DNA of 64,000 nucleotides. Origin: Thalia democratica (Eukaryota). The notes under the pieces are model-generated. The model was not told the origin of the DNA and did no database searches. It worked only from the letters and a program-made list of their open reading frames with translations. The stretch lies in contig OZ241829.1 of the NCBI GenBank assembly GCA_965202585.1, forward strand, positions 58,962,001 to 59,026,000, given 5' to 3'. The translations under genes and the position numbers were made by a program. Positions 1 through 25,800 of this stretch are shown piece by piece (position 1 is the first letter of the stretch; every line of letters begins with the position of its first letter).

Positions 1-625
1 TTTTTACTGCTTTTTTTTACCACACCCAAAAAAAGGTTACAGAAACATAATTTTGTTTCAGTAATTACAAGTGAATATACAGTTTAGAATATAGAAAATA
101 CAAACTTCTTTTTTTACAGACAAAAATTTTTGTACTAAGTCATTTTTACCATCAAAATATTGGTTTACAAAAGTTAATGGAGATTTAATTTCATTTATGT
201 TTCATTTCTATGAAAATGTCGTTACAAAAATATTTATTTGTGTTTTTATTGAAACTAAGTTTATAACTATTTAGATTATTGCTGTATTTTGTAACAAAAA
301 AAGTCGCAAAGTATTTTTAGCTTGAAGAAAACTTTATTAGAAACAAATTTAAGATTTAAAATTAAAAAATGTGATTCTAATTCAATGCAAAATAAATATA
401 AGCGTTTGTCTTATTACTTATTAAACTTTATTTTAAGATTTTTATTTTTATTTTAAAAATACGGCGACATGCAAAAATTTTTCTCCAAAATGTTTGGCCC
501 GAAAGACTTTAATAAACCTGGCACGCGACTTATAAAAATATTTAGCCAAAGTTTTAAACTGTTCAAGTCCTTGTTAGTATGTACTTACTTATTAGTGTAA
601 GTTTAAGTTTATATCTACAAGAACC

Positions 626-945
626 GGGTGCACGACTGTTCAAATTCGGACAATTCAAATTCCGACAATTTAAATTTTTATGAAAAAATTGAAAGGGCCA
701 CAACTATTCAAATATAAAAAATACATCTGTAGATCTTATTAGTATCTACGAACCATTTTTTTCTTTTTGCAAATCATTAAATATTTTTTGAGAAATGGCT
801 TGAATAAAGTAAAAAAACATAGTCATTTTTAGCAATTTAAAAAAAGCTTGAGAAATATTTAAGATTTAGCAAAAAAGAAAAAATTTTTATTAAGAATTTG
901 AATTGTCGGAATTTGAGTTGTACGAATTTGAATTGTCATGTAACC
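626..945. mobile_element. 320-bp MITE with GG..CC terminal inverted repeats and 8-bp TSD (Merlin-like, tentative)
   Basis: TIRs GGGTGCACGACTGTTCAAATTCGGACAATTCAAATTCCGACAAT / ATTGTCGGAATTTGAGTTGTACGAATTTGAATTGTCATGTAACC; perfect TSD CAAGAACC at 618-625 and 946-953. Confidence 0.8.
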
Positions 946-1823
946 CAAGAACCTATACTTCTAATTTTTTGTACACTTTTACGTGGAAAAGTTTGTGAAA
1001 TTAACTGTTTCATTGTTCTTTATATGTTATTTTACTTTAGTGGTATTTGAAATTATTTGCACCACTAAATCTTTATTCATACTTTTATTTCTCAAAAGAA
1101 AAGTCATAAACTTCTTGATATATAACAAATATTCTATTCAAATATTTAAAACAAATATTTAAAACAAGTCTGAAACTAAATTATGAGAATACAATATTTA
1201 CATTGAATTATTTCAGCTATGTTTAGTTTCGGAGAACTAACATTTCTTTTATTATCATTTGTTTTTATTTTTAACACAGCTACTGAGTATAATTACGCAC
1301 AATTTGAATAATGTTTCTACTAATTGTTTTATATTTTTACTAAAAGTGCCAAAAATGAGCAATTAAAATTAAATGTCGAAAAATTCTTAACTACCATTCT
1401 TAGTCTTTTTTAATAAAAGTTTTTGATTAGAGGCAATATATAGAAAGTATAGTCTAAATATCTTCTTTGTGTTTTCATAGCTTCTAGTGTTCCTAAATAA
1501 AAACTCGTAAACTTATTTATAGATTTATTTTTAAAAAAATGAAAATACCACCTAAAAAACTTAAAAACTCCACCTACAAAATAAAAAGATCTAGTAGCAC
1601 AAGTTTATTAAAAATCTCTCCCAAATTTTTCAAAACAAGATAGCGATTTTTATACAACTATAGTTTTTAATATAATTTCAACACATTTGTAAATATATCC
1701 TTTAAAAAACGTTTGTTAAAAAAGTTTGTTTTGATACATAATTGTAAATGCTTTTTTTACAAACTCCAAAAATTAACAAATTTTTTTAATTGCCAATAAT
1801 AAAGAAAACATAAACTTTTAAGC

Positions 1824-2045
1824 CAAGGGTCGTCAGCTTTTTATAAATCAACTTTCCTAAAAAAATTGCTCACGGGCCGCGAAATTAATAAACATTAATA
1901 AACCGTGAGCAATTATTTTCTTAAATGAAAAGCTTACATAATTTGTTTTCACAAATTTTTTTTAGTTTTTAAAATTTGACTTTAGCTACAAAGTCAATCG
2001 CGAACAGTAGATTTTTTTTTGCGGGCCGCAGCTTGTCGACCCTTG
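1824..2045. mobile_element. hAT (Charlie-like) MITE
   Basis: TIRs CAAGGGTCGTCAGCT / AGCTTGTCGACCCTTG; internal GCGGGCCGC motifs; degenerate 8-bp TSD TTTTAAGC/ATTCAAGC; related to the 56973-57718 element. Confidence 0.7.
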
Positions 2046-5035
2046 ATTCAAGCTAATGATTTTGTTACACAGAACTCCTTTTTTTGTTTTTGTTTATAAA
2101 CTAAAAAAACTAAAGACTTTTAAGTTAACAAAGTAGTCATATTATAAAAAAAGTTTCAAAAGTACTTTAACACGTGAAAAATAATTTAAAACATACTAAT
2201 ACCAACTATAAGCAAAAGACAATTACTCAAATGATTATGAATACATGTATAAAATTAAAAGACGATTTTTTTTTAGGATTAAAAAGAATGCGCAAATAAA
2301 AATAAACATTTATAATCAAACAATTATATAAATATAAAACAAAATTGTTTAGGTTATTTAGAGCATACTTAAATCAAAAGTTTTTATAATTTTTTCTCAG
2401 CATGAATTTAGAAAATAACTTAAAACCTTTTTAAAGGTTTTTTTTTACATATTTTTGTTTTAAACAAGTATCTAAGTTTTTTATTAATTTTAAAATTACA
2501 ATATTTTCTTTATCAAACATATATAACTATAAAATTATAAAAACTTTGTACTCAATGTGAAAGACTACCATAATACAACTCTTCTCATGTCATATTACTT
2601 TGGCAAGTTTCTTGTGATTTCGGCCGATAAAATATTTTCATCTTCTCCTTAAATTTCTTAAAAAGTTTTATATAACTATAAGAAAAATTTGTACTTCATG
2701 GTCTTATTACGTTTTTATTTAGCTGAGGATAAGAAGTTATTTTAAATCTAGATTGTATAATCTTTGTTTAGTTTGTAAATAGTCAGTTTTGAGTTGAGTT
2801 CTATCCGAATTTCTATCAAAAAAATTACGCATGACAGTAAAAAATGAAAACTTAGGTTATAAGTATAGAATTTCAAAACATACGTATTTGGTAGAGCTAA
2901 ACGGTTATTTTTAAAATAACTGTTTAAGTACAACAAAAGAATATTGCTTATCGGTTAAATTATATTCTTTTTTTAATTAGGTACTTGTATGATTAAAATC
3001 CCTCATATACAAACTTTATTAAGAATATTCAAATTTATTACAAATTTAGAAAAAAAAAACATAAAGCGGAATACTAACCATACTCAAATTAATTAGAAGT
3101 GAAAAGTCTTTATTTTATCAACATATAGCAAAGTTATAAAAGTAATTTAATTTAATTAAAAAACTTATAAATAAGTAAGGTAAATGACTTTATTGCCATT
3201 TTTATTTGATAAACAAGCTAATTTTATACAAGCTGCCTTAAAAAAAATACGTTTCATTGATAGTTTCACACAAACGATTCAAATTTTGAGTTTCTTATAA
3301 TTTTTTTTTTTTCGGTTTAAAAAAAAAATCTAAAAACTACCACATATATCTACACCGTTGTGTAGATAGTAACTATTTTAGTGTATTGAAAAAAAGAACA
3401 TAATTAATTTTTTTATTAAGTCTCTTTTCTATTTTGTACTCCTCCTATTAGACTTATTTTTATCATTTCATGTTAAGTTTTTAGTAATTAAATATGTATA
3501 CTTTATAGCAGGGTTGCTACAACTTTCCATGACTAGGTTTTTAATGTTTTAGCGGTTCTAACTAGTATGATTTTATACATTTAAACTTTTGTGCCCTCAG
3601 CCTTATAAAATTAAGTAAAACATAGATTTTTTACAACCCTTAGGTTTATCAAAAACTGTTTTATAAATATCTTATTTTAAAAATGATTTTATTTTGAGGC
3701 CATACGATCATCGCCACAACCACAAAGATACTCTAAATAAACAATGACATCGCTCTAAACTTTATCTGAGTATAATGCATAGAGAATTTTACTTTTTTCT
3801 ACTTCAGATTAAGTTTAATTAGTTACTAAAACATCTTCTGAAGATTTTTCGAACGCTTACAGAATAGATACTAAAACTTTAAAACTAAACTCAATTATTC
3901 TCATTACTAGCGTAAAAAAGAAATCATTTTATCAAAATATATTTTAAGATACACAAATGTTTTTAGGTTTCGATTTTAGTATTATAAAATATTTTCTTTA
4001 AGCAAAAAAATACGGTTAATTCTCAAAAAACGAAACCAGAATGTTTTGTATTTTTAATATAGCTTTTTGTGTAATCTTTCATTATGTTTTCAATCAAACC
4101 ATAAATAAAACTAGCTTGGTAAAATAAGTTTTGTATATCAAGTTTTTGAAGAATTTACCAACTGTTTTAACCACAATCGATAAACATACATATGTTTTTT
4201 TATTGTAAACATTTTATACTCTATTAATTAAAAGTTTATACTGTAGAGCGATGTTTCTCAAAATGTTCAAAAAAACCACTTACTGAGCAAAAAAGTAAAG
4301 AGGATGACGAAAGTTTTAAAAAACTGTAAGCAGTAAAATATATAGAAGTTTCTGTTAACAGTATTATATTAGTTTCTTATTTTTTATGACAAAACTACTC
4401 TTTTTAATTCAAATTTGGCTTTAATCTAAATCAAATGATTGTAAATTTCATAGTTTCTTTAACTTAGATCGTCAAAAATCTAGTCCCGAGTAACCAAGGT
4501 CAAAAAACTAAAAGTTGTAAAACAGCTTTATAACACAATAATTAAAATAAAGTTAGAGAAAGTGCTATAACAAAAGTTTTATAATACTTTCTGGAAACTA
4601 TAATCAGAAATTTTAAACCAATAAAAATGTTTTTTAGTGTATTTCAAATAACTTAATCATTTCTTATTCAAATACTAAAGTTGTAATAATTAATTTTTCT
4701 TTTTACAACTAGAAAAACTTACAAAAGTTATTATTTTGGATGCAATATTTGTATATAAAAACCAAAAAACTCTAAATAATAAAAGTTTAGATAGATATAT
4801 GTTTTCTATGCTTAAAACTTATGTTTTAATTAAGTATACAAACACTATTAGAACAAGTTATCTAAAAATAACAAAAGAGAAGCACAAAGTGGATAAAAAT
4901 TTTTAAGTTTTGTTAAATATAAAAAGACTTTTTTTTATAAAAGAAAAATAAAAACATCAAAAATAAAAACAAATAAGGATAAATAAGAAAAAAAAAAAGA
5001 TTAAGTACTTCTACAAAGTTTAAAATCTAAATGTA

Positions 5036-5167
5036 GTTGCTGCTGCAATATACGTTTCAAATTCAATACACGTTTCAAATAACTTTGTATACACCACACG
5101 GACCTCAAATGCGGTATATAAAGGTGGTGTAACTACAAAGATGTTATTTACATACTGCAGTAGTTAC
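5036..5167. ncRNA. Candidate structured ncRNA (hairpin), copy 1
   Basis: 126 bp identical between two otherwise diverged copies. Inner stem AAATAAC-TTTGTA-TACACCAC (5077-5097) pairs with GTGGTGTA-(AC)-TACAAA-(GAT)-GTTATTT (5124-5149); outer stem 5036-5047 pairs with 5156-5167 (11/12 pairs including G-U). No known family recognised; strand unresolved. Confidence 0.45.
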
Positions 5168-5405
5168 CAAGGGGCAAAGCATTGAAAGCCAAATTTAAAG
5201 GAAATTCTTATCTTAATATAGTAAAACAATTAAGCTATTCATTTAGCAACCATTTTCTACTTTTTTATACTTTTAGCTATCCCAAAAAAAAAGGTTTAGA
5301 AAAACAACATTGTATTTAAATGTTTACAATTAAAAGGGTAAAATCTAACAATTTTTACGTAAAATATAAGATTTATGCATTTTTTATCATTTCTTTTTAT
5401 AAAAC

Positions 5406-5530
5406 TATTCAGTCCTAGACAATACGTTAAAAGGTATTCGTTGTGTGCGACTCGATAACCGAAAGATTTTTTCGTGCACCAGGTCCTAGGACTGAATATT
5501 TTGAGCACATTTTCTTTTCGTTCAATAAAC
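5406..5530 (+). mobile_element. Short non-autonomous element with subterminal inverted repeats + 3' stem-loop (Helentron/DINE-1-like, tentative), copy A
   Basis: Inverted repeat TATTCAGTCCTAG (5406-5418) / CTAGGACTGAATA (5486-5498), then a TTGAGC..GTTCAA hairpin; homologous to 23014-23136 (-) and 45190-45310 (+). Confidence 0.55.
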
Positions 5531-7192
5531 TATACAAAATTGGTTTGAAAAATTTAATTGAGATTCAATTTGTTGTATATTCCTATTCTACGAAAAGTTG
5601 TAAGGTTATTTTTATGAATTAATTAATAATACTAACCAAGCATTAAAATCATTATTATTGTAATTACATAAGTTCTTAACTATTTCGCAAGAATATATTA
5701 AAATTTATAAAACTTTTTAAAATAAGGGTTTTATCTGAACTCGCTTTAGAATTGTAACACAAAAGTGTTAAACTAGGCTGATTTTTTCAAATCAATTAAA
5801 ACTTATTTAAAGTATTCCTTTTTTCAAAAATTGTTTTACTAACCTAAATATTTGACAACCCTTTCTAGTACAAAACTACTACAAAAATGTAGTAATATAC
5901 TACACAATTAATAAACTTTACTAACCTAAATAGTGAGTAGAAACAAAACAACCTACCGCGCTCAAACATTTAAAAGAGTTGAAAGTGTGTTCTTATCAAT
6001 ACAATAACTAAATCTGAATAAGCCAGTAATCTTTCACGTTTTTAAACATCTAACGTTAAGCGTTATATTTAAATACAAACTGTTTTAATTTAAAAAAAAT
6101 TTTGTTGTTTTTAATTATCGGTAGTGTTAAAGTTAGTTTTAAAATACAAAACAATTTTTGAAATGTACTTTTAAGTTGTTTTTAGTCTTTTAAAAGTTGT
6201 TTAAACTTTATAACTGTGTTTACTACTAATTTATAAGTTTTCTAACCTTTCTTAACTCCATAAAAAATACTTAACTTAGCATATCTAGTTAATTTTAATT
6301 TTAAATTTATTATTTTATTAATATAAAGGTGATATGCTACTAAAAACAGTACTGTTCTTTTTTAAATATCCCATTGGTAGTATTTTATTGCAATAATAGT
6401 TAAAAAGAAAACAGCAAAAACAAATATAGCATTACAGGGAAAGCTTTAAGTATCTCTTTAAAGATTTGATCGATAAACATTATTAGATAAAAATGTTAGC
6501 TGATATATAGTTTTTTAAGTTCAATTTAGTACAGTGATTACTCACTTATCCGGCCATGTTGGGCAAGTTTTTTTTATAATTTTTGTCGGATAACTACAAA
6601 TATTGTGTTTTTATTCTAATAAACTACCTCTTTTTATTATGCAATGCATACAACAAAACAAACACTAAATTTTCTGTTGGTTATCATTATTTTCTACGAA
6701 ACAAACCTTTAAAACTTTAAAAACAAATTCGCTTGAAAGCACATACTTGAGTATATTTCTAGATTGAGAAACGATTTCAAAAATTAAAGTAAATAAGAAT
6801 TGACCTAATGAATACTTTTATTTTATTTCCCAAGACGTGTATGAATTTCAGTTTAAAAAATGTAATTAAAAATTTTTTAGCACTTAAGAGTACATAGTTT
6901 TTTATCGAGTTTTTCATTTAAATTAAATTTATAAATATAAATTATAAATACATCCTGGTGATCTGTTATAATCATATTAATACTTTAAATAAAAATTTTA
7001 CCAATTAAAACATTTATTTTTTGAAACTTTTAAAGACGAATAAATGTACTAATAATTACCATTTTTTGAAAACAATTTTTTTTTACAACTAATATTTTTA
7101 GCCAATATAGTTTATTGCATACTTTATACTTTAAAGGTGGCAATCAAAGTTCTCAACATAAATAAAAGAGAATGATCAATTAAAAATTTTAT

Positions 7193-7325
7193 TAACAATA
7201 CAATGCTTCACTCGTTTGAAAACGAGATGTTCGGTTGTTTAAAACGTTATTTAAATATTCTTTTTGAATAAGATTTTAAACAACTGAAGATCTCGTTTTC
7301 AAACGAGTGAAACATTGTATTGTTA
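7193..7325. repeat. Foldback inverted repeat (52-bp arms, 29-bp spacer), probable MITE
   Basis: 7193-7244 is the reverse complement of 7274-7325 with 3 mismatches; each arm contains the internal palindrome CTCGTTT-GA-AAACGAG. Confidence 0.85.
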
Positions 7326-8711
7326 TTAAATTCAAAATTGAATATAGTTTATTAAACGATAAAAGAAAAAAAAACGCTCAAAAATTTCGGTCTATAGATC
7401 CAATTTATACGGTATAAAAGTTGTAGTTTTGCATGAAAGTTTTTTTGATAACTTTTTACTACTTTATGTGTTAGAAGCAGCGTAGCGTTTTAAGTAGCTA
7501 AAACTTAACTTATTTTCAATTAGCGAAAAAAAATTATTAAGGAAAGTATTTAAATAATGTAAAGTAATTTCAATTACTTTATGCTTTAAGAAACTATTTT
7601 TTACAGAAAAGTTTAAACATAGTTTGTAAACCAGCATTTTTCATGATAGAAACTTACTGGCAAAAGTAAAACACATAACTGAATTTAAAAAAACTAAGTG
7701 CATTTATAAGAGTACTATAGAAATTTGTATACTACGTTTTAAAGCATTTAAAATATAACTATTTTTTCAAAAAACACTAATTTTTCAAAAAGTAATTACA
7801 TAATTAATTATTCAAGATTTTTATTTGCTTAACTAAGTTTCACCATTTAAGGGATCTTCAGTTACAATTTAAATCTGAAAAATAAAAGTTAAACAAAACA
7901 TGCAAGATACTATTAAGCAAAACAAAAAAAGTAAATTAAAAATTGTAAATTATGTTACTTAGAAAATTAATCAAGAATTTGAATAAAATATTAAATAAAC
8001 ACTATGGGTTTAAGCTTTTAAAAAACTAAATGTGAGACTGTAATATTAAAAAAAACATAAGTGGCTCAAAAATTAAAGGAATAAAACAAGCTACTTACAT
8101 ACTATAATGTACAGAGAAACTTTTGAGTCTTTAAGTTGAAACTTACTTATATTGAATGTAAAACTTCTAACTTTAAAATCATTACTAGTTTGAAGGGAAA
8201 AACTAAATAAAACTAAAACTATAACACACAAAGGATTGGAGTCTTTGATTTTTAAAAACTACTTATACTGAATAAGCTTTTAACCGGTAAAAAGGAAACT
8301 TTAAACTTTTAACTTTGTAAAAAACTTTAACTCTAAAATAAATATATAGTTGCATAGAATTAAAAAACAATGTAAATAGTTTAGATACTATAATAAAGAA
8401 AAAAGTTTTGAGCCTTAAACAAGAAAATTGTCTGTACTAGAATTACTAGATAAACTGAAAACTTTAACTTAGGTATTGAACATGAAACTACTAGATTTAA
8501 AAACACAATCAGCTTAAAGTGAATAAATAAATTAAATAACCTACATATTACCATACACAAAAGGATTAAAGTTTAATTTATAACTTGATAGGCTACTAGC
8601 TGACTGAAGTTAAATCGAACAAATTAAAAAGAGCATTGAATTTTGTTAATAATATTGCTTCTAATATCATGACGTAACTAATATATGGTTTGAACTTAGT
8701 TAATGCTAGTA

Positions 8712-9545
8712 CAGTACACTACCGCTTAAGTACGCAAATTGAACCCGACCAAAAAGTGCGTACTTAGCACGGGTAGTGCGTACTTTTTGACGATATAGTA
8801 TAATATGAAATTTAGTTGTTTGTTTTCTTTCTTACAACTAGCCATTAAATAATTAAGCAAAATAAACAAGTCATTTATTTTAAATAACATTTAAAACATA
8901 ATTCTAATTTGCAAATTTTTTTAATAGATTTTAAAATCATTTATTTTTTCAATCAAAAGCTTCTACATAATTAATACATACATTTAATATAGAAAGTCAA
9001 TGTCAGTCAATGGTTTATAAAAAAAAATATTAAGCTACATTTTGTTTTGTTAGAGGGAAAGTACCAAACTACTTTGTGTTTACCAAACATTTTCAAAACA
9101 TCAATGTATGTACATTTAAATTAAATTATGACTTAACTATTTTGTATATGTAGGTTTTTTTAACTTTGTCATCTAGATTTTTTTATTTTATAGCATTACA
9201 GCTCAAGTATCATTTTTCTTTTTACTTTTCTGCAACCACTACATAAGTACTTAGTTTGTTAACATTTAATAACAGGACTGTCACAATCTCAGGCCACTTG
9301 GCCTACTCAGGATTACTCACCCTAGTTTAAAAGTTGTGAAACTATCAGGCTAACTCAGCAGGTTGGCCATTCTACCTGGATATATAAAATAATCTGGAAA
9401 AATATAATGATTGAAAATTTAGGCAAAAAAACTGGAATTTCTTGAAGTTCTAGTATAACATCCTTTACTTTGTCTTTCTGGATAAGTGCGTACTTAAGGC
9501 GTGATGCGTACCAAAAAAAGTGCGTACTTAAGCGGTAGTATACTG
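8712..9545. mobile_element. Non-autonomous Tc1/mariner (pogo/Tigger-like) element, 834 bp
   Basis: TIRs CAGTACACTACCGCTTAAGTACGCA / TGCGTACTTAAGCGGTAGTATACTG (1 mismatch in 25) flanked by TA on both sides; subterminal GTGCGTAC repeats. Confidence 0.85.
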
Positions 9546-9669
9546 TAATTAGTTTTTATAGTTTAAAGCTGGAGTTTTATTAAGTTATTTAAGTAAAAAA
9601 TTTTGTACTTATAAATGAAAATGAATTTAAGTTAATAAAATGACATGCAAAACTAGCTAGCAAGCGCTT

Positions 9670-10750
9670 AAGTCTTAAAGTGAAGTTTTTTTTTAATGTG
9701 GACGATTAGCAAAAAGTTCGTGTCTTTTGTTTAAGTTGTTTATTTTGTTGGCTCTGGCTGTTTCTAGCTTTTCTAGGCTGTAAGTGCTACATATACTGTG
9801 GATTTTTCTTACCTCCCCGATGTGGTGAATTATATTCTATTTAATATTTTACTTAATACTGTTGTTTTTTTAAAAACCAGATGTATTTAGCTAGTTCGGT
9901 GCTGTTTTCTTTGTATGTGTTAAAACTGTGGTTATGGTTGTACCATCTGCCTTTTAATTACCAGTGCTTTTAATGTATTTCTTTGTTTCCTTTTTTGATA
10001 TTACAGTGGCTTTGTAAATAACATTTTTTATAAGGCATTTATTGTTCAAGGGACAGGAGTTTTTAGATTGACAATTACAAGTTGGGGTGTTATTGATTTA
10101 GTTTTTTTCTCTATTGGAAATTTATATAGGGTTTTTTTATTATTTTTTTGTATTATAACTTTGATACTACTAATACATCTGTATGAAATCTTGCAATTAT
10201 TTTGTTTAAAATTTTGTTAAGTACTTCATTGTTTTTAAAACTTTTATCGGTGAGTTTGAAAAATATTTTCCCTAAATTTGTTTTAACTGAGTGGCAGCAG
10301 GGTGGGTTGAAGTAAATGATTTTTTTTGGTCGGTTTCTTTACTTTTTAGTTTAAGGGTTTTTATTATCTGAGTATTTTACCATATGTTTAAAATTTGAAT
10401 CATTTAGAGCATTTTAGTATGTGGGTGCAGAGTTTTAAATATTTTTTCACTTTTGGAGAGTCTGTTAATCCTTGTTTCAATCATTTCTGGAAGATTTTTA
10501 TTTAGTTATTGGGTGGTTTAATTTTTTTTTGATATATTTAACATCTGAGTTTACCTTACGGTATGGTTTGTATTCATCGTCATTTAGGTTTAGAGTTCTG
10601 TCTAGAAAGTTGCATGTGGTTGTGCCAATATCAATAGTTATTTTGAATCTGATTTCGTTAAATAGTTTGACTGTCTTCTTTATAGTATTTTCTAAAGTTT
10701 GTTTATTTTTTTGCTCGATGATAGGCCGTCGTCTCTATACAAACCGATTT
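9670..10750 (-). mobile_element. 5'-truncated, degenerate Penelope-like retroelement (RT C-terminus + GIY-YIG endonuclease remnant)
   Basis: Minus-strand translation: IGLYRDDGL (RT YxDD), KLFNEIRFKITIDIGTTTCNFLDRTLNLNDDEYKPYRKVNSD, then RWYNHNHSFNTYKENSTELAKYIWFLKK and EKLETARANKINNLNKRHEL. Contains stops and frameshifts. Confidence 0.8.
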
Positions 10751-12089
10751 CATTAATTTTATAGAGGAATTTAAGGTGGTTAAGAGCGTAAAGGCCTATA
10801 TGGTCACAGATCTTTTAAACAAGTTGGCTTATTTAAGTTAAAAAATTAGACTGTGTTTAAAAAAAAATTTAAAGCTACTTCGATTAAATATTAGCAAAGC
10901 AAAAATTTATATTTTTAAAAGTTGAACATTTGTTTTTGTTGTAATGCAATTTAAAGAGTTTTACTGAGAAAAAAAAAATTGCTTATGTATATCTAACGTG
11001 TGCTGTGTTACTGTTAATAAATTAAAAAAACTATTTAAAATGATAAATTCTTACGGTAATTTTTATATATAGTTGACTAAATTTGTTTATTTTTTTATGT
11101 ATAACGTATAACGATAGGTGGTGTAAACACGTAACAAATAAAGTTAGTTTGTACCCATAACTGTTTTAAAATAAACTTAGTAAAAGTTTTCTGTTTACAA
11201 TCTGTTTGAAAACTTATAATTTGAAAAATGTTACGAAACAGCGTTGTTTTTAAAATAAGAAACACTGCACTTTTGATTAAAAATTTTCTTTATATTTTCA
11301 TTTCAAATATTAAGGACAACTACAGACTGTAGTATGGTATATATGAAAAATACCTGAACTTGCCAGATATTTTATTCAAACGATTATCATTTATGCACGC
11401 ATTAGTTGACGTTACATTATGTAATAGATTAATGACCATTACGTAATTTAAGACAGTGTAACAGAAAATTTCTCAATTTATACACTAATTAGTTTGTATT
11501 TAGTTATTAGAAAAAAACCTTTTGATAAAAAGTTTAGAAAACCCTGGTCTATACAAATAATTATATTTCATAAAATATATTTAGTTTAATTACAAATAGT
11601 AAAATGAATGTTTTGCAGTTCTTTCATAAAATCACGAATTTATACAAAAAGTGAGAAGTCTTAAATTTTAAAGTTTTAAGCTTTGAAACATTATTGAAGA
11701 AACACTAACTGAGAGGCGAAGTATTACTTTACATTGCTTTAAAACCTTCTACACATGATAAAAACACCGAGACAAAATAGTCAATTGTCTTGTTGAGGTA
11801 CGGATAGGAAACTTTTTTTTGTCAGCAGGCCAGATTTACAATGAAATGTATTTCGTGAGCAAAACTTTAAAAAAATATTACTAAATAAAAAGTGTATTTC
11901 AAATAACTTTAACAATTTTTATTTAAGTACTAATTTTTTTTATTAAACTAAAACTTTTATTTAAGCGGGAAAGCTAAACTTCGTGATTTTCATTACTAAT
12001 AGAATAAAAAATCATACTATGAAAACTAATTTTAAGACATTTTTAGTTTTCTATTTTATTTTTTAGATAAAATATTTAAAAAATAGTAG

Positions 12090-13630
12090 AAAAAATGTTT
12101 AATTCTTAGAAAACAAAGTCAGAATGTTTTGTAGTTTTTAATGTATATTTTTATGTAATGGTTACTAATATTTTTAATCAAACTATAACTTAAATTAGTT
12201 TCAAGTTATGTGTTAATGATCAATTTTTTGAAGAATTCACCCACTATTTTAACCATAATCAATAAGAATACATCATTATTCTTTTTTGTTACACTTCAAG
12301 ACTCTATTAATTAAATGTTTAGAGCGATGTTTCTTAAAATGTTCAAAGAAACCACTACTGAGCAAAACAGTAAAGAGGATGACGAAAGTTGTAAAAAACA
12401 GTAAGCAGTAAAATATACAGAAGTTTCTGTTAACATTATTATATAAGTTTTCAATTTTTGATAAAAAAAAACTATACTTTTTAATTCAAACTTGGCTTTG
12501 GTATAAATTTTTAAAAAATTAAAAGTAGAAATTAAAATAATTAAAATCACCTTATTTTAATAAACGTTCTTCTTATGTTCAAAGGCAAAGTTGCAAGAAT
12601 TGAGTATGGAGTAAATCTAGCGGTTGTAAATCCTACAGTTTTTTTAATTTAGTTAATCATCTAATATCGAGTTACCAAGGTCAAAAATTAAAACTTGGAA
12701 AACAGCTTTGTAGTATGGTACTAAAAATAAAGTTAGAGAAAAAAACTATAACGAATTGTTTTGAATGTTTTCTTGCAATTGTCCTTCTAAATTTTAAACC
12801 TACTAAAATGTTAGTTAGTGTATTTCAAATAAGTAATCATTTCTTAACAAGCACTAAAATTGTATATCTATTTTTTAATTCACTGCTAGAAAAACTTACA
12901 AAAAGTATCATTTTGGATGCAAAATTTGTATAAAAACACCAAAATAACTCTAACAAATAAAAGCTTAGATAAATATATATTTTTTATGTTTAAAACTTAT
13001 GTTATATTAAGTATGCTAACATAATTAAATCTATTTGTTTAAAAATAACAAATGAGAAGCATTAAATGTTTAACAAACTTTTAAGGTTCTAAAAGTATGA
13101 AAGACTTTTTTTTTAAAGAAAATTCAAAAAAATAAAAACAATAAGGATAAAGTAAAAAAAAACTTAGACTAAGTATTTCTACAAATTTTAAAACCTAATT
13201 GCAGTTGCTGTTGCAATATACGTTTCAAATTCAATACACGTTTCAAATAACTTTGTATACACCACACGGACCTCAAATGCGGTATATAAAGGTGGTGTAA
13301 CTACAAAGATGTTATTTACATACTGCAGTAGTTACCAGGGGGCAAAGCATTAAAAACCAGGTTCAAATGAAATTCTTATCTTAATTTGTTAAAACGATTT
13401 AGCAAATCAATTAGCAAGCATTTTATACTTTGTTCTACTTTTAACTACCCCAAAAAAGGTTTAGAAAAACAACATTTTGTTTAAATGTTTACAATTATTT
13501 ATTTGTTTTATACTTAAAACGGCAAAATCTTATCTAAAACGTAAAAAATAAGACTTATGTAACCTTGACTACTTTTTTCTTATAAAATTATTCAGTATTT
13601 GTTGTATATTTCTATTCTACAAAAACTTGT
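12090..13630. repeat. Copy 2 of the ~1.5-kb direct duplication
   Basis: Same blocks as 3990-5600; offset is 8,168 bp at the core; lacks the 5413-5567 segment. Confidence 0.9.
13204..13335. ncRNA. Candidate structured ncRNA (hairpin), copy 2
   Basis: Identical to copy 1 except C5043->T13211, which turns a C-G pair of the outer stem into U-G. Confidence 0.45.
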
Positions 13631-16600
13631 AAAAAATACTTTTGTATATTTTGTATTTAATTCCGATTAATAAGTCAAGGTATTATGCGTATTTCTAACA
13701 AAATGAGTATTTACACAACACTTGAATATATGTTTTAAAGCAAAGGTTGGTAAACTGCAACAAGAATTTTTTTAGCTTTTAAACAGCTTGTTATAAGAAA
13801 CAAAGTTTAAGATTCTATAAAAAAATTATTTACAAGTTTTATCGTATTTCTTTCGTAAATAAACAGTAAAGTGTTTTTATCGTTATTCATTACAATTTTC
13901 CTTTGATGAGCTTATTTAAAATGTTTATTATATTTTTAAAAGTACAACAGCTTCCAAAGACTTTTTTCTGACAAGTCTAACCTGCGAAAAACTTTTTGTA
14001 GTAAATATTAAATATGAGTTGTAACTTATGAAGGGCTACCGACCTCTGTTGTTAAGTTTCTAAGTCAATGTTAGTAAGAAGTTAGGTTATTATTTTATAT
14101 ATTCGATTTGAAGAAAATTAGCATAAGTCTTAATCTTTTATATTTACTTTCTACATTTTCAAACGAAACAGTTAATGGTTCAAAGTAGTTCATAATTGTT
14201 TTTTTTTGTTAAAATGCTTTACTTTAATTTTTAAGGAGGTGTTTACGTTACACAAACGAGCTAAAACTAAAAGTTTAGCTCTCTGTTAAGACAGTCAAAA
14301 AAAGTCTCCTGCAAATAATAAAGCTAGCATAAAACTAATTTAAGAATGAATTATAGAAATTTAAGCTAAAAAACATACTACATTATTTTAGTTTATTGTA
14401 AACGTTTCAGGGTGACTATTAATTACATACTGAGAAGTTTAGAGTTTTTTGTACTGTTTTTTTAATTATTTAGATATTTTACCCAAAAGTATAAATTAGA
14501 ACTGTAATTGAAAAGTTCTTATGAAATAAATTGTTATCTGTTTTAAAAATAATTTTTCATAGTGTTAGTTCCACTTTTATCATAATTAAAAAAGTTTAAA
14601 CTCATACAACATCAATTAAGAAACATCTTATACAGACTCGTTTAAAATAACTAAATAGACAGAAATTAATTACTGTTTACTGTTCATTTAATTTTGTATT
14701 GTTAATTAGTGAAGTAAATTTTTCTACTAAGTATGACACTTTTTTTTATAAATTTGTTTTTTGATTAGAATAACATTAAGCATAAAAAGTTAATATGTAT
14801 AATTGATGCTATTCTTTGAAACTTTATAAATTTACTGTATTTTATTGTTTATATAAACATTAAAAACTTAGGCATCTTGCGTGAGTGTAACATTTGTATG
14901 TAATATAACACTTTAAATAATCTCTTGTATAAAATATTACTGAGAAAACCATCACTCAACAACGAAAATTAAGTTAAATTTCAGAAAAAAGATGTAAAAT
15001 TTTCTTATATATTTCGATGATCAAAAATTACAAGATTAAGCTGAATATTTTTTAAGCTATATCTTAAACATATATCTCAGTAATGATGTTCTTACTTTAA
15101 AAAGTAAACGTACGTTAAGTAAATTTTACATGTTAAAAGCAATTAAATTAAGATTTTACCGTAATTATAGTAATCACTAGTAAAATTAGCTCGCATAACT
15201 GAGTTAACATCAATATTAACTTTTTAAAGTTATTAAAACTAAATTAATGATTTATCTGAGTTTATTTTTTAGAGTTCTCGTAATTAAACGTGCGTTTCTA
15301 AACTTCCTGTACTTCTAGTTTTTTACGCTTTGGCAACTTTATTGGTACATCTTTAGCTTAAGTATTGTATTCCTTAAAAATTATTATGTATTTATTCTAT
15401 AAAAATACTACTTAAGGCCACAAATATATAAATTTAATGTCTCGTAAACCGTTTTTAAAAACTATATAATCTAAATAATAGAAAAGTATCTAATAACATA
15501 AAAAAAATACGTGGAAAAATGAGATAAATGTATTCATCTATAATCTATGAATAAAAGGTACAACTTAAATGAACAACCAATATATAGCATAACTGCTTAC
15601 TAAATAAAAAGATAAAAAATAAGAAAAATTGATATACTTCTTATAGCGTCAAAAAGTTACATAAAAACTACAAAAACAAAACATTTATGTACATTGATAC
15701 TTACAAAAAATCTCTTAACATGCTAAGTTTGTATACGTTGTAAAATTTGTAAATACTATTAATTAAACCTACAACTTTTTTTAAATTTTTGTTTGATAAA
15801 TTATCTACATATTCTAAGGATAAAAATAGCATTTTTAAAACAAAAACTGGAATTATAAACAACTGTTTTATGAAAAGCTTTTTAAAGCAAATGACATGTA
15901 AATTTTTACAAATTTTTCAATCCAATAACTAAGCTCATTTTAAAGAATATAAATTTAAAGACCTTTTTTCGAGTTAAAAGTTATAAATAAAGCAACTAGA
16001 ATGAGTTTTTCTTTTTATTTTATTTTTTTAGCTTTCGTTTATATTAACAAACGAACTAGTGCCTAAACTAGTATATTCTTAAAAATATTAAAATATCCTT
16101 AGTTTTTCTTAGATTATACATAAATGAAATAAGTTAGCTTATTTTTTTATTTCATTTACAAAAAACAAACAAATTAGCTGTGAGCACTGATCAGCAAACT
16201 TTCTTAATTTCAAAAACTTTATCAATTACATTCAAACTTAAACAAATCTGTTTGTTTATTTCTATGTATTGAAATTTTTTGAAACAAGAAACAAACTTTT
16301 TTTAAATATTATAAAATAATTCAAAAGTATTACACTTGTTCAGATGAAATTTTGCTTTTAGAAACTTTACCAGGAAATCATTGAAAATAGAATAAAAACC
16401 AGTGTACTAAACAGATAAAACTTTAGTTAGATTAGTAGCAAGTAAATAGTACATTTTCAAGTAACAGATAATATTGTAACAAAACAATTATTTTGCTGAT
16501 TTTGAATATTTTGTAGTATAAAAATTCAAGGTATATATAACTTATACAATTAACTACGACAAAATCAACTGTAATGCAATTTATTGATAGAAATCGTATC

Positions 16601-19600
16601 GCCAAAAATATTAAAACAAGATTAATACGTTAAAATTCGTCTAAAAAACTTTAAACCTACTTATATCCATCATGAATAAATATGTCTAAGAGATTGTCTT
16701 AAAAAAAAGTTAGACAACTTATTAATCTTAACATAATTAGTTTAGTGCACTTTTAAAGATTATAACACGTTTAATTGTTTATTCAATTAAAAAACAGCTT
16801 AACTTGCTATGAACTTAAAACGTTTTAAAGTTTATACTTAAGGTAAGTCTTAGAAATTCTATTTAATTTCGTTTAATAACAACTTATAGTAACTATTTTA
16901 CCAGATTTTTTCCGGTGCATAATCTACTCAAGAAATATAACGAAACACATTTCATTTTTCCTTAAATTTATTTGAGTACTTTCGTAGTAAGTCTTATCAA
17001 AAACTCTATCACACTGAATTAAATTGAATTGAAATTGAAATAAGATTATACTGTAGTTTAAAGTTTTAAAATATAAAATGACGTAATGATCGAATGTAAA
17101 AACTAACTAAATGCTTAAACTGTAGAACTTTACTGTATGTACTAATAAAACTCGTTAAATTAAAATCAAACTAAAATAAACCAGCGATAAAAATGTAAAT
17201 AAAACTACACTTAAAAAAAATTATACGAATAACTAATTACTTTAAAATTACTTAATATAAGGATTTAAAAAGTTTAATTAACTAACTAATTTACCATATT
17301 TAAAGATAAGTTTAATTAGTTATATTTTATCAATTTTAACAATTTTGTTGTTTAAAATAAGTATGTAAAGTTTAGAATAGTTTGTATTAACCAAAATATC
17401 TAGGTAGAATATTTTTTACAAAATTCGCACGCTGTATAGGTGATACAGAAGCTAGACTATATGATATGCATCTAAAATTCAAGAAAAACCAGTTATTGTA
17501 AATTAAAACTGTTGAAGTACATTAATTGCAAAATTATGTTTGTAAAGTAATAAAATTAAGTAATTTTTAATCGTTTGATATAGTGCTGTAACAAACTCTG
17601 GTTTTAGCTTTAATATAGTTTTTTAATAACACACAACAGAATAATTTTTCTAATTAATTTATTAACATTATGGTAAATATAAGGTTCCAACATTGTTGAT
17701 GTAATTCTTTTTAAAACTAATATAAGATAAGTCGTGTTTAAATGTTCAAAACTAATTTTTAACTTATTTTTCTAAGCTTCAAAGTAAAGTAGAAAATTAA
17801 AGTTTTATTTAATTTAACCTATCGTATTTCTCTACAAATTTTAATAAAAGTCGAATAAATAAGCCACTTTTTGTGATCTTCTCTGTAATTTGTCTGTTAA
17901 AATGTAGTTTAAACACGCAATACACAAAACAAATATTGTTATAAAAACCTCAATATACTATTATAATTTTTTAAAGTATTAAGTTTATAAAGATGGCAAC
18001 AGAAGTTACTTATATTGTTACCTACATTATGGTTTCGTTAATATAATTGTTTTACAAAATAATCGATGTTTGATAAATTGTTTAATGCGTTATTTGTTTT
18101 ATTAAAAATTGCAGTCTTTTTATTTTCTAGATCCCTACCGCTTCGCAACATTGTGCCTGACAAATCACAGCTACCTTTTTCACCGTGCTTTAATCTATGG
18201 CCTGTGGGCATTACTGTATAAGCTGCAATCTCTAAAAACAAATTAGTGAAGAAACCGCTAAAGTGCAGTCTTAGTATATAAGAGGTGTCATTTCTGGAAA
18301 CACCAGACTCAATACACAGTTAAGTCTATGAGAAAGTGAAATGTTTAAGATAAGCCTTCTTAAAAGACTTAGTGTATGTTTTTTCAAAGTTAATATACAC
18401 TGCTGTATATTAAATTCTTTGGATATGTATTTGGAAAGTTTTATGTGTTACTGCGCGATTGACTCTTTAAAATCAAGAACTATAAAACTAGACAAAAAGT
18501 GCATTTGATTTAGTGTGCTACTTAATATCATTACTGCTCGTTTCAATATATAAGTTTGTATGTTTTAATGGTTACCGAAGTTTTCGATAAAAACATATTT
18601 AGACTGTAAGTATTTATCTAAAAAACTATTTTAAACAAAAATTGTGGTTTGAAAATTTGCTTGGTTAATACTTTAAAATGTTTATTTTTTCTCTTACTTA
18701 ACAACATCGAAGTTAGAAAAAGATTTAAACTAAATTTTAATTTCAAACACGTAGTAAGGTCATTTTACATTTGAGCAATCATTAAAATAGAAAACACATA
18801 AACAGTAGATATTTTACAACTTTTTGCAACTTCTCACACAGTGCAGTGTAATAGCCAGTGTTTTTTAGAATATTTATGGCCATTAAGAAAAATTAGAGTT
18901 GATCCGCTTAACAAGTGATATCTTTAAATGTTGCCCACCGTGCTAAACTAGCTTTAGGCAAGTTCACACTTAAATTGGTCATTATAACACAACAAATTGT
19001 GCTTAATACTTTTATTGACTGTACATTTGCATTATCAAATACCTTTTGAGACAAGTTTATAATACGTTTTAATATTTTGCGAAACTTGATTTAAATTGTG
19101 AGATAGTCAAAAAAAAATTCGTAACAAAATATGTTAATTGCTTTAGACATTTTCTCATTTTTTATTATCTCATGACAAGCTTTAAATTTTTGTTGATTTT
19201 TTTTAAGAATTCAGTTTCGACTTGAGCTGGCCAACTTGTATTAGTTTGAAAGTTGCTTGAGGTAGATTATATTTTTCTAAATCTAAGACAAAGAACGATA
19301 AGTTAAAAAGGTTAGAGTTAATAACTTCTTCAAGCAAATAAGTATTTTAACTATAAAATACTTTTTATATCTAATTACTGTTAACATTATTTAAGTTTAT
19401 TCAAATATATTTTTCTAGTTTCAAAACTAACTAAATAGTTTTAGTGCGATTTTTTAATTCAGTGTTTAGTTATTAATAAAAGCTACTGTATGAGTTAATA
19501 GATAAAAAAATTGCTATGAACATAAATTTTAAAACTATAATAAAACAATCAAACAAAGCATTAAAGTTAACAAGAGCATTACTTAGACAGAAGTTAAAAA

Positions 19601-19745
19601 TGTTTAAACATACTTTTCAAACTTAAGCATTGTTCTTGTGAGCTTTAATAATGAAAAAAAATAGTATTTTAGTTAATTTTTTTTTCTTGTTTAGATAGAA
19701 TAAATATAAAACTTTGTTGAATCTCAGTCTAGCCCATCTAAAAAG

Positions 19746-22800: not shown

Positions 22801-25800
22801 TACAAACAACTTTAAACTAGTTTGCATTTAATGTTAAATACTCGCAAAAATTATTATATTTTTTTCGAAGTAAATATAAAGTTTCATTATTTTTTGAAAT
22901 TTGTTTATGTAATTTCTATGGATTTTGAAATCCAGCTGTGACATAATTAAAAAAAAAACCATAAAACGATAAAAAATTTAAAGTGTTGAATTAAACCAAA
23001 CGGTATATATATTGTTTATTGAACGACAAAAAGAGCGCTAAAAATATACTGTTCTAAGACCTGGTGCACGAGAAACCTTTCGGTTATCGAGTCGCACTCC
23101 ACGGATACCTTTTAACGTCTTTTCTAGGACTGTATAGGACACAAAAGTGAACTTGAGCTTTAGTTTATATTAAGTTGCTTAGCAATATTTAAACACATAA
23201 AAGTAAAACAGTGTATCGTTGAAACAATTCCATTACTAAATTTTTACAACTTTTTTCTTATTTGTTTACTGTTTAAACTGTCTCTAAACACTACATGGTA
23301 CCATATTTCAGAAAAGCAAGCAGAATACCAAATTTTTTAAGATATATAAGTTAAATATTACAAAAACAATCTTGACACAAACAAACCCATAGATCATCAA
23401 AGCAAATTTTAATAAATTTGTGCACATTAAATGTTGAATAAGTGTTTTAAGATCCGAAAAACTAAAAACATCATAAACTAATTAAAAACTTGAAACTGAT
23501 TTTTAATTATAAAACCAAAGTTATAACACTTAATGTAAACTAAAATATCAACTGTGTATGGTAAAAAGTTGGAGTAAGGTAACATTTTTTTACGGTTTAC
23601 TTTAAATTAAGAAATATAATCAAAAATATTTTAGTTTTAATTAATTCTTTTGTTACAATAAAATTTCATGTGTAAATATTGATTATTTTTATTATTTAAT
23701 AAGTTTGATATACCTTATAGAAGTATGAAAATATTTTTTAAATATGTTAATAATCTAGGTTTTCATTTGAGATATACCACTGCGCATTAAGCTTTTATAG
23801 AAACAGTTAAACTATTTAGATTTATTTATCGTGCTTAATTCTTAACTTTAGTATTAATTTTAATAACTGAAAAATTCTAGTTGATAAACATTTTATGCTA
23901 GTTTTATAACCAACTTAATTTTTGAAACAGTCACATGCACACTGCCAAGACAACTGCCCATGAACGTCATAGTACCTGCAGTGCAAACGTACGCTGTTGG
24001 AGACCAGGTTGCACTTCAGTGCCCACCTGAATTTGACCAATCAGGTGCCACATTTACCCGATGCGGAGCTAATGGACAGTTTAGCGTAATTGATACTGTA
24101 TGCAAACAGAGTAAGTTGAGGCATTTTAACAATAAAAAGACTTTTAACTAGGTGAAAACTGAACTGTAGAATTGAAGTTTATTCGTTTAATAAGAAATTG
24201 TGTGCTTTATGTTCTACGAATTTAATCTTTATGTAAACTTACCTTTGAAAAAGATTCAAACTAAGATTTTTTTTAACAAAAAACCAACAAAGTTCCTAGA
24301 ATTTGCTAACCAAGTTTTTATTAATGCTTATCGCTAAAAAAACCTTATTTTTACAGAAGTGATCTATGGTGACTGGGAAATTGGAGAGTGCAGTGTCACT
24401 TGCGGCATGGGAACAAGATACGATGTTAGACAGTGCTTGCAAGGAGTATGCCGCGAAGGTCTTATCAGAGCTGAGCTTTGTCGACTTCCTGCTTGTGTAG
24501 CTTACAGCGATTGGAAATTGGGAACTTGCAGTGTAACTTGCGGCAGTGGAGTGCAAGTAGACACAAGGACGTGTTTGCAAGGAACCTGCACTGGAGAGCT
24601 TATGAGATCAACTCCCTGTGTTAGGGAAGTTTGCGCAGAGTACGGAGACTGGGAAATTGGAACTTGCAGTGCTGAATGCGGAATAGGAATGCGAAGAGAT
24701 GTAAGAGCTTGTATTCAAGGGACATGCACTGACAGCCTTGTAAGATCGGTTCCTTGTGAAGGATACGATTGTGAAGTGTACAGTGACTGGGTAGCAGGAG
24801 AATGCAGTGTCACTTGTGGAAGCGGAGTCAGCACTCATACCAGAACTTGTGTGCAAGGTAAATGCACGGAGAGCCTTATGAAAACAGTTCCATGTGAGCG
24901 AGAAGTTTGTGTAATGTACGGAAATTGGGTAATGGGAACTTGCAGTGTTGCTTGTGGTACAGGTGTTAGAGTTGATACAAGAGCTTGTATACAGGGTGCA
25001 TGTGAAAATCTTGTAAGAACAGTCACATGTGAACAAGAAGCATGTGTCGTTTATGGTGATTGGGAAACAGGATCGTGTAGTGTTACTTGTGGTCAAGGAG
25101 TAAGAGTCGAAACAAGGTTATGTTTACAAGGGGTATGCACTGAGGCTCTTTCAAGATCGTTTCCATGTGAAAGACAAGCTTGCATCGAGTATGGTGACTG
25201 GCAAATAGGAACTTGTAATGTTGCATGTGGAAAAGGAGTTAGAATTGACGTTAGAGAGTGTGTACAGGGAAATTGTGATGAAGATCTTGTAAGAACGATC
25301 CCATGTGAAAAGGAAGCTTGCGTTATCTATGGTGAATGGGAAATAGGAACTTGTAATGTTGCTTGTGGTACAGGAGTAAGAGTTGATAGAAGAGCGTGCG
25401 TACAAGGCGTATGTACTGAAAGCTTAATTAGATCTGTTCCTTGTGAAAAAGAAGCTTGTGTTATCTACAGTGACTGGGAAGCAGGATCATGCAGTGCTAC
25501 TTGTGGCTCGGGAGTACAAGTTTACAGAAGAACTTGCTTGCAAGGTGATTGCACCGAAGACCTTGTACGAAGAGTTCCTTGCGAAGGACCTGTATGCGTA
25601 GTTTATAGCGAGTGGTTTATAGGATCATGCAGTGCTACTTGCGGTTCAGGTGTAAGAGTTGACACTAGAGAATGTTTGCAAGGTGTTTGTACTGCAGATC
25701 TTCGAAGAACACTTCCGTGTGAGGAAAGCGTCTGTGTTGTATACAGCAACTGGGAAATAGGAACATGCAGTGTTGACTGCGGTACAGGAGTAAGAGTCGA

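Follow-up and report, generated by a model that had tools for sequence, protein, structure and literature searches.

In a 64,000-nucleotide stretch of the genome of the tunicate Thalia democratica (contig OZ241829.1, positions 58,962,001 to 59,026,000; hereafter the window, with position 1 at its first letter), the two copies of a direct duplication of about 1.7 kb share a core of 126 bp that does not differ at a single position, within flanks that have diverged extensively. This block is far beyond chance expectation and is probably a distinct, constrained element. Our preferred, although tentative, interpretation is that the core represents a TATA-centred promoter or cis-regulatory module, which would have been kept identical in the two copies by selection combined with gene conversion. 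The segments on which this analysis rests are the following.

3881-5603, + strand: whole duplicated segment, copy A (direct duplication, ~1.7 kb).
11970-13632, + strand: whole duplicated segment, copy B (direct duplication).
5035-5183: 149-bp block of copy A with two mismatches (5043 and 5170), coinciding with a G+C island.
13203-13351: near-perfect block and G+C island, copy B (from the alignment).
5044-5169: perfectly identical 126-bp block, copy A (alignment, 0 mismatches).
13212-13337: perfectly identical 126-bp block, copy B (alignment, 0 mismatches).
4245-4370 versus 12321-12444: second block of raised conservation within the duplication, at 92-94% identity.

The two copies are about 71-81% identical, the lower figure being that over all columns of their alignment, and this alignment bears out the observations of an earlier, sequence-only reading of the window: the core is identical at 126/126 positions, the 149-bp block that includes it contains only two mismatches (5043, C/T, and 5170, A/G), and the flanks are diverged, with 64-90% identity per 50-nt window outside the core. 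The edges of the core are sharp: in the 43 nt bordering it on either side, the identity is already down to ~84%, and it then drops to ~80%. Outside the core, the longest perfect run of the duplication is 25 bp, and given a background identity of 80-85%, the probability that 1.7 kb would contain a perfect run of 126 bp at any position is between 2e-10 and 3e-7. Conservation along the duplication is patchy (92-94% at 4245-4370, 80-88% beside the core and 64-72% at the far left), as would be expected of a regulatory region. The second conserved block is not a shared reading frame, because it includes a 1-nt indel; it contains a TGACG half-site (GGATGACGAAAG) and two conserved donor-like sites of the GTAAG type. 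The copies are direct repeats located 8.2 kb apart, with 6.4 kb between them, and the intervening DNA contains an element with terminal inverted repeats (8708-9550) and the remnant of a decayed retroelement, so that insertions may have separated an originally closer duplication.

The core also stands out by its composition. The window is very A+T-rich, with a G+C content of 21-27% outside exons, whereas the G+C content of the core block is 36.9%, compared to 15.3% in the segment on its left (4885-5034) and 22.1% in the segment on its right (5184-5332). Among the 149-bp windows in positions 1-18000, only 0.1% reach 39% G+C, and the duplicated segment has no sharp G+C island other than the near-perfect block. 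Because the perfect block coincides with this island, the core appears to be a compositionally distinct unit rather than a random stretch of the duplication. Within it, we identified the following motifs.

5115-5122 (copy B 13283-13290), + strand: TATA box TATATAAA, flanked by AAATGCGG and GGTGGTGT; the TATAWAWR consensus is matched on the + strand only.
5144-5150, + strand: initiator-like TTATTTA, 6/7 positions of YYANWYY; a candidate from reading of the sequence.
5046-5062 and 5064-5080, + strand: tandem 17-nt motif CAATAYACGTTTCAAAT, with an 18-nt period.
5078-5145: inverted repeat bracketing the TATA box, AATAACTTTGTATACACCAC with GTGGTGTAACTACAAAGATGTT, which is the inner hairpin of the sequence-only reading.
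5036-5167: outer inverted repeat, 5036-5047 with 5156-5167 (+ strand); alternative register 5044-5052 with 5153-5161 (- strand).

The identity of the core, the G+C island, and the content and geometry of the motifs are established. The TATA sequence had been placed at 5116-5124; the box is indeed present, but it starts at 5115. The two strands of the window together contain 157 TATAWAWR sites, and of all these, the two TATA boxes of the core have the most G+C-rich flanks (9/16). The A of the initiator-like sequence, at 5146, lies 31 nt past the first T of the TATA box and is the putative start site. YYANWYY is the initiator consensus, and the spacing between the TATA box and the start is typically ~26-31 nt, so that 31 nt is a textbook distance. 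Thus, as far as can be judged from the sequence, the identical cores of both copies carry the arrangement that defines a TATA-box core promoter of RNA polymerase II (Pol II), a TATA box ~26-31 nt 5' of a candidate initiator. The doubling of a short motif in the core had been noticed previously as well, but the repeat unit is longer than originally described, namely, 17 nt, with copies starting at 5046 and 5064; the 11-mer ACGTTTCAAAT from this unit does not occur elsewhere in the window. The arms of the inner hairpin consist of the inverted motif pairs CTTTGTA/TACAAAG and ACACCAC/GTGGTGT, which bracket the TATA box, and the outer inverted repeat matches at 9/12 positions only. A strong TATA box surrounded by short motifs in repeated and inverted arrangement is typical of promoters with proximal control sites, whereas the same set of motifs inside an RNA would be entirely coincidental. 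A promoter and gene conversion had both been listed as alternatives to a structured RNA in the sequence-only reading; these alternatives seem to fit the content of the core better than an RNA structure does.

Under the model that we favour, the core would be a TATA-box promoter together with proximal control sites, and transcription would proceed rightward (+ strand), starting at about 5145-5152 in copy A and at about 13313-13320 in copy B. We infer the promoter activity, its direction, the start site and the role of conversion from these sequence features. The module would have been duplicated along with flanking sequence, ~1.15 kb on its upstream side and ~0.4 kb on its downstream side, after which purifying selection would have held the two cores similar until at least one recent, short gene-conversion event homogenised them. 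Conversion is needed in addition to selection because selection acting only on binding sites would not keep every spacer base unchanged. We consider a functional module, held similar by selection and recently homogenised by conversion, to be the most parsimonious account. Conversely, recombination between sequences that are 78% identical is inefficient, so that a recent conversion event would be more plausible if the core had already been held similar. Under the same model, the hairpin would reflect two protein-binding motifs in inverted orientation on either side of the TATA box, and not an RNA stem.

What the module might control can be approached from its position. The duplication ends ~420 bp past the putative start site, with nothing coding in between, and the combination of 1.15 kb upstream with only ~0.42 kb downstream suggests a small, self-contained transcription unit. 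This layout suggests that the module would drive a short non-coding transcript; folding of the 110-135 nt that lie downstream gave no convincing structure (z-scores of -1.2 and -0.2). Alternatively, the module could be a distal alternative promoter or an enhancer of a giant extracellular-matrix gene encoding thrombospondin type-1 repeats (TSR) and CCP domains, which occupies the + strand from ~19.7 kb onward. Both copies of the core reside in the gene-free part of the window (1-18 kb, in which no recognisable coding exon was found), 14.6 kb and 6.4 kb 5' of the ATG of this gene and on the same strand. The giant gene needs an upstream start, because its first coding exon begins at a splice acceptor, at 19694, that is strong and T-rich.

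In many respects, therefore, the core resembles known TATA-box core promoters of Pol II, including duplicated alternative promoters: it contains a canonical TATATAAA in a G+C-rich setting, a candidate initiator at 31 nt and repeated or inverted short motifs within 100 bp upstream, and it is located in gene-free DNA 5' of a gene on the same strand. Several observations, however, weigh against this interpretation. We estimate that a TATAWAWR match would occur by chance with a probability of ~10% in 149 nt of this composition. Unlike the promoters of paralogous genes, the core extends over 126 bp without a single change and is thus far more uniform, and its start site is a prediction from sequence. 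The perfect run requires conversion as an additional assumption, since control regions tolerate changes between binding sites. Copy B is not needed for the giant gene, the nearest one, for which a better-placed candidate promoter exists at 18275, and in this respect, too, the core departs from known promoters of this kind. In the stretch from 13.4 to 18 kb, the A-over-T skew runs slightly counter to that in the introns of the giant gene, which is weak evidence against + strand transcription in this region; as a guide to the direction of transcription, A/T skew was rejected as too noisy. Finally, perfect identity with sharp edges in diverged flanks has the classic look of small-RNA paralogues.

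The main competitor is a model without any function, in which the two copies are non-functional spacer DNA and the core is the tract of a recent, non-crossover gene-conversion event of at most 126 bp, bounded by positions 5043 and 5170. We regard this model as possible but on balance improbable. It readily explains the perfect identity, the sharp edges and the immediate drop to ~84% and then ~80%, and it requires only direct repeats, such as those found here 8.2 kb apart. Short conversion tracts are commonly of this length, and the absence of any RNA family, homologue or covariation in our results is what non-functional DNA would yield. A sharp-edged block of identity within older, diverged paralogues, the hallmark of conversion between neighbouring paralogues, is exactly what we observe, with 126/126 identical positions compared to 84% in the adjacent 43 nt. 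However, a tract placed at random in 1.7 kb would rarely match a G+C island (37% versus 15-22%), a cluster of motifs and a strong TATA box, and it is in this coincidence with a compositional island and motifs that the core differs from a plain conversion tract. Furthermore, with no identical run longer than 25 bp outside the core, sequences that are 78% identical offer little homology for a recent exchange, and the patchy conservation elsewhere in the duplication suggests constraint.

The sequence-only reading had attributed the conservation of the core to purifying selection on an RNA structure composed of an inner hairpin and an outer stem. RNAfold reproduces both the hairpin and the stem, but the significance is modest: the z-scores are -2.33 (+ strand) and -1.88 (- strand) for the 149-mer, -2.84 (+) and -2.55 (-) for the hairpin alone, and only -0.87 and -1.06 on the two strands when the perfect 126-mer is folded by itself. 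A palindromic DNA sequence would likewise fold equally well on either strand. The arms and the loop of the hairpin are alike identical between copies A and B and, because the stems are no more invariant than the loop and the unpaired stretches, any constraint appears to act on the sequence and not on the pairing. The sole change within the fold (C to T) does keep a U-G pair, as had been pointed out, but this is one event only. Covariation is readable in the flanks only, because the core contains no variation. Compensated stems that RNAalifold proposed in the flanks on the - strand were rejected as a selection artefact: flank structures derived from a single copy lose pairs as often as they keep them (pairs kept/broken by the substitutions in the other copy: 4/8, 1/11, 7/7 and 3/10). 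With no Rfam match, weak z-scores that are not strand-specific, a loop as invariant as the stems and no covariation, selection on an RNA structure is supported by none of the tests applied here.

Searches for known classes of RNA agree with the earlier statement that no small nuclear RNA (snRNA), transfer RNA (tRNA), spliced-leader RNA or microRNA (miRNA) was recognisable. The Rfam 15 covariance models yielded 0 matches in the whole window at the gathering thresholds; at E<=10, the best match in 4800-5500 was MAT2A_C (20 bits versus a gathering score of 47, E 0.25), and at E<=1 there were 0 matches in 3880-4820. ARAGORN found no tRNA. A canonical animal primary miRNA, the substrate of Drosha, is an imperfect stem of ~33-35 bp with a small apical loop and single-stranded flanks. 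The hairpin of the core has a stem of ~21 bp (15-22 bp, with two bulges), a loop of 26 nt and a base with 29 unpaired nt on the 5' side and 6 on the 3' side, at -21 kcal/mol for 87 nt; a canonical miRNA precursor, primary or processed, was accordingly rejected, the stem being too short, the loop too large and the unpaired base too long. Box C/D small nucleolar RNAs (snoRNAs) have a terminal stem, with the C box RUGAUGA close to the 5' end and the D box CUGA close to the 3' end; none was apparent, as judged by the lack of RUGAUGA, TGATG and CTGA on either strand of 4990-5270. Box H/ACA snoRNAs combine two pocket-bearing hairpins with an H box (ANANNA) in the hinge and an ACA located three nt from the 3' end. 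In the core, an ACA at 5150-5152 follows the hairpin, but we found one dominant hairpin without an internal pocket, no convincing second hairpin and no match to an H/ACA family of Rfam, and this class was rejected as well. Sm motifs have the form AU4-6G, or AGCUUUGG in the spliced-leader RNA of Ciona (PMC7986045). The core region contains no AU4-6G, no AGCUUUGG and no AGCTTTGG; only relaxed AAUUUGR strings are present, on the - strand, at 5195 and 5063. It contains no hammerhead core and no telomere template either. The 16-nt spliced leader, which in a spliced-leader RNA precedes a GU, is absent from the whole window, and the 8-mer UAUUUGAA that the - strand of the core has in common with it is a weak resemblance, spotted post hoc. 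Resemblances to a mirtron, to H/ACA, to U4 or U5 and to a spliced-leader RNA were all dismissed as short, spotted by eye after the fact and without backing from Rfam. As a separate observation, the last 12 nt of a Ciona-type spliced leader (TATTTGAATAAG) occur once in the upstream region of copy A (4663-4674, - strand) and are not conserved in copy B; with an estimated chance expectation of ~0.07 per window, this match may be fortuitous or may be the trace of a leader-tagged retro-insertion.

These results bear on a broader alternative, namely, that two paralogous genes encode, on either strand, a small non-coding RNA of tunicates that is as yet undescribed, ~150-160 nt long and without an Rfam relative, with the 149-bp block as its body; constraint on this RNA would have to be so tight that it prevented any base change. 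We consider this alternative unlikely, while recognising that it has several points in its favour. An invariant core with sharp edges within flanks that have diverged by 20-30% is the usual pattern of paralogous RNA genes, and G+C islands flag RNA genes in A+T-rich genomes. Although it is 63% A+T, the 149-nt block is devoid of T4 and A4 runs, whichever strand is read, and T4 runs closely follow it on both strands. The z-score of the hairpin, about -2.8, also fits. One possible version of this model places the RNA on the - strand, starting at A5183 and ending at the first T4 run (5025-5022), for a length of ~160 nt; in copy B, a T5 run lies directly upstream of the proposed starting base. In its invariant core, diverged flanks, G+C island, hairpin and lack of T4 runs, the block is indeed similar to multi-copy small RNA genes of the snRNA, Y RNA and vault RNA type and to precursor miRNAs. 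Unlike these, however, it belongs to no Rfam family even at E<=10, lacks the boxes that define the known classes, an Sm site, a convincing H/ACA architecture, a template and a spliced-leader sequence, has a stem too short for Drosha or Dicer, and folds weakly, favouring neither strand, with no covariation. Moreover, the TATA box, the correctly spaced candidate initiator and the tandem 17-nt motif would all be coincidences within the body of such an RNA, and adjacent T runs are to be expected anyway in flanks with 15-22% G+C.

A protein-coding role of the core appears very improbable. The sequence-only reading had mentioned a terminal exon of 49 codons after an AG, and this frame (5036-5182, entered at the AG at 5035-5036) is indeed open in both copies, with the AG and the stop (TGA in one copy, TAA in the other) retained. 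The two substitutions would be one conservative and one synonymous, and a small in-frame exon upstream (ATG at about 4305, donor GTAAGC) might supply the start; by our reading of the alignment, this ATG and donor are conserved and the phase fits. The codon score of the frame is the best among the six frames, but at +4.8 bits it falls far short of the 23-48 bits of the real exons of the window (non-coding windows score at most 0.2), and the acceptor lacks the T-rich tract that is present at all real acceptors here. No homologue was detected by either word-indexed or exhaustive HMMER searches (5.8 billion proteins; 1.84 billion representatives), and an exact-protein look-up of a nearby open reading frame returned no record. 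In addition, selection at the protein level would not erase all synonymous change, and there is a 1-nt indel near the candidate upstream exon block. Given the low score, the weak acceptor and the lack of homologues in the searched proteins, the exon is an unlikely explanation.

The possibility that the core is the relic of a mobile element, either because the 1.7-kb copies are the terminal repeats of an old retroelement or because the core itself is an old miniature inverted-repeat element, appears very improbable: a degenerate remnant with reverse-transcriptase-like and GIY-YIG-like sequences lies between the copies (9957-10814, - strand), and the core has nested inverted repeats and a G+C content like that of the miniature elements of the window, but that remnant is 4.3 kb from copy A and lacks the geometry of a long-terminal-repeat element, the outer inverted repeat matches at 9/12 positions only, a decaying relic would not remain perfect, and the core has only two copies in 64 kb, at corresponding positions of the duplication, whereas the members of the real repeat families of the window are dispersed, with 2-3 copies each. 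On geometric grounds, we rejected the idea that the two copies are long terminal repeats. Using a 40-mer of the core and allowing up to three mismatches, we found only two matches in the window, both at the matching positions of the duplication. Exact-DNA scans with 22-23-mers of the core gave no match in metagenome contigs, prokaryote genomes or viral contigs, and a literature search for k-mers of the core returned nothing relevant.

Several probable mobile elements were detected around the two copies. Copy A includes an extra ~130-160 bp at ~5405-5562 that has no counterpart in copy B and at the start of which lies a short palindrome (CAGTCCTAG...CTAGGACTG); further copies of this sequence occur at 23010-23137 (inverted) and ~45183-45328, and it is probably a miniature inverted-repeat transposon that was inserted after the duplication. 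The 840-bp element at 8708-9550 has 27-bp terminal inverted repeats that are ~96% matched (TACAGTAYACTACCGCTTAAGTACGCA), with internal copies of GTGCGTACTTA near both ends, and is probably a non-autonomous DNA transposon. The retroelement at 9957-10814 (- strand) is decayed and split by stops and frameshifts. It contains, in this order, a YRDDGL motif resembling that of reverse transcriptases, FNPP...VKTNLGK, and a CxC...CPL...C stretch with a GIY-YIG-like stretch, an order of motifs that we take to resemble that of Penelope-like elements. None of its pieces was recognised by Pfam; one piece is 82% identical to a protein encoded on an 818-bp metagenome contig in ENA (ERZ17083695). A stretch at 619-990 (~200-370 bp) shows ~80% DNA identity to 32777-32993, just after the exon that encodes the TSR array, and is a repeat rather than a coding duplicate, because the match spans several frames and both strands.

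The giant matrix gene downstream of the two cores has the following recognisable parts.

Acceptor 19694, ATG 19746, donor after 19812, + strand: first coding exon, with signal peptide MSRCSTLISCFVLVAALALQSQG.
20660, + strand: EGF-like exon.
23888, + strand: CCP exon.
24359-32557, + strand: 8.2-kb exon encoding ~59 thrombospondin type-1 repeats.
Up to ~46.8 kb, + strand: further CCP exons.

The nearest database relatives of this gene, from Ciona, Oikopleura, Clavelina and Lingula, are only 29-35% identical to it. Its acceptor at 19694 could accept either a 5' exon or a spliced leader. The candidate proximal promoter of the gene is TATATAAG at 18275, which lies in a G+C island (18101-18340), 1.4 kb 5' of the first coding exon.

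The core also invites comparison with ultraconserved non-coding elements, such as enhancers, in that more than 100 bp are unchanged amid neutral DNA that has diverged by 20-30%. Those elements, however, are defined by comparison between species, whereas the core is shared by two paralogous sequences in one genome, where conversion can mimic constraint. Should the block prove to be a neutral conversion tract, the finding would be ordinary and would serve as a warning that perfect identity of paralogous sequences within a genome is no evidence of function. An RNA gene, instead, would mean a further small RNA, specific to this lineage, in a group of animals whose non-coding RNAs are poorly catalogued. 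If the promoter or control module that we favour is real, it would be a compact, 150-bp piece of DNA fit for testing at the bench, and it would imply that, even though this tunicate genome is A+T-rich and evolves fast, conversion combined with selection can keep a regulatory element in it unchanged.

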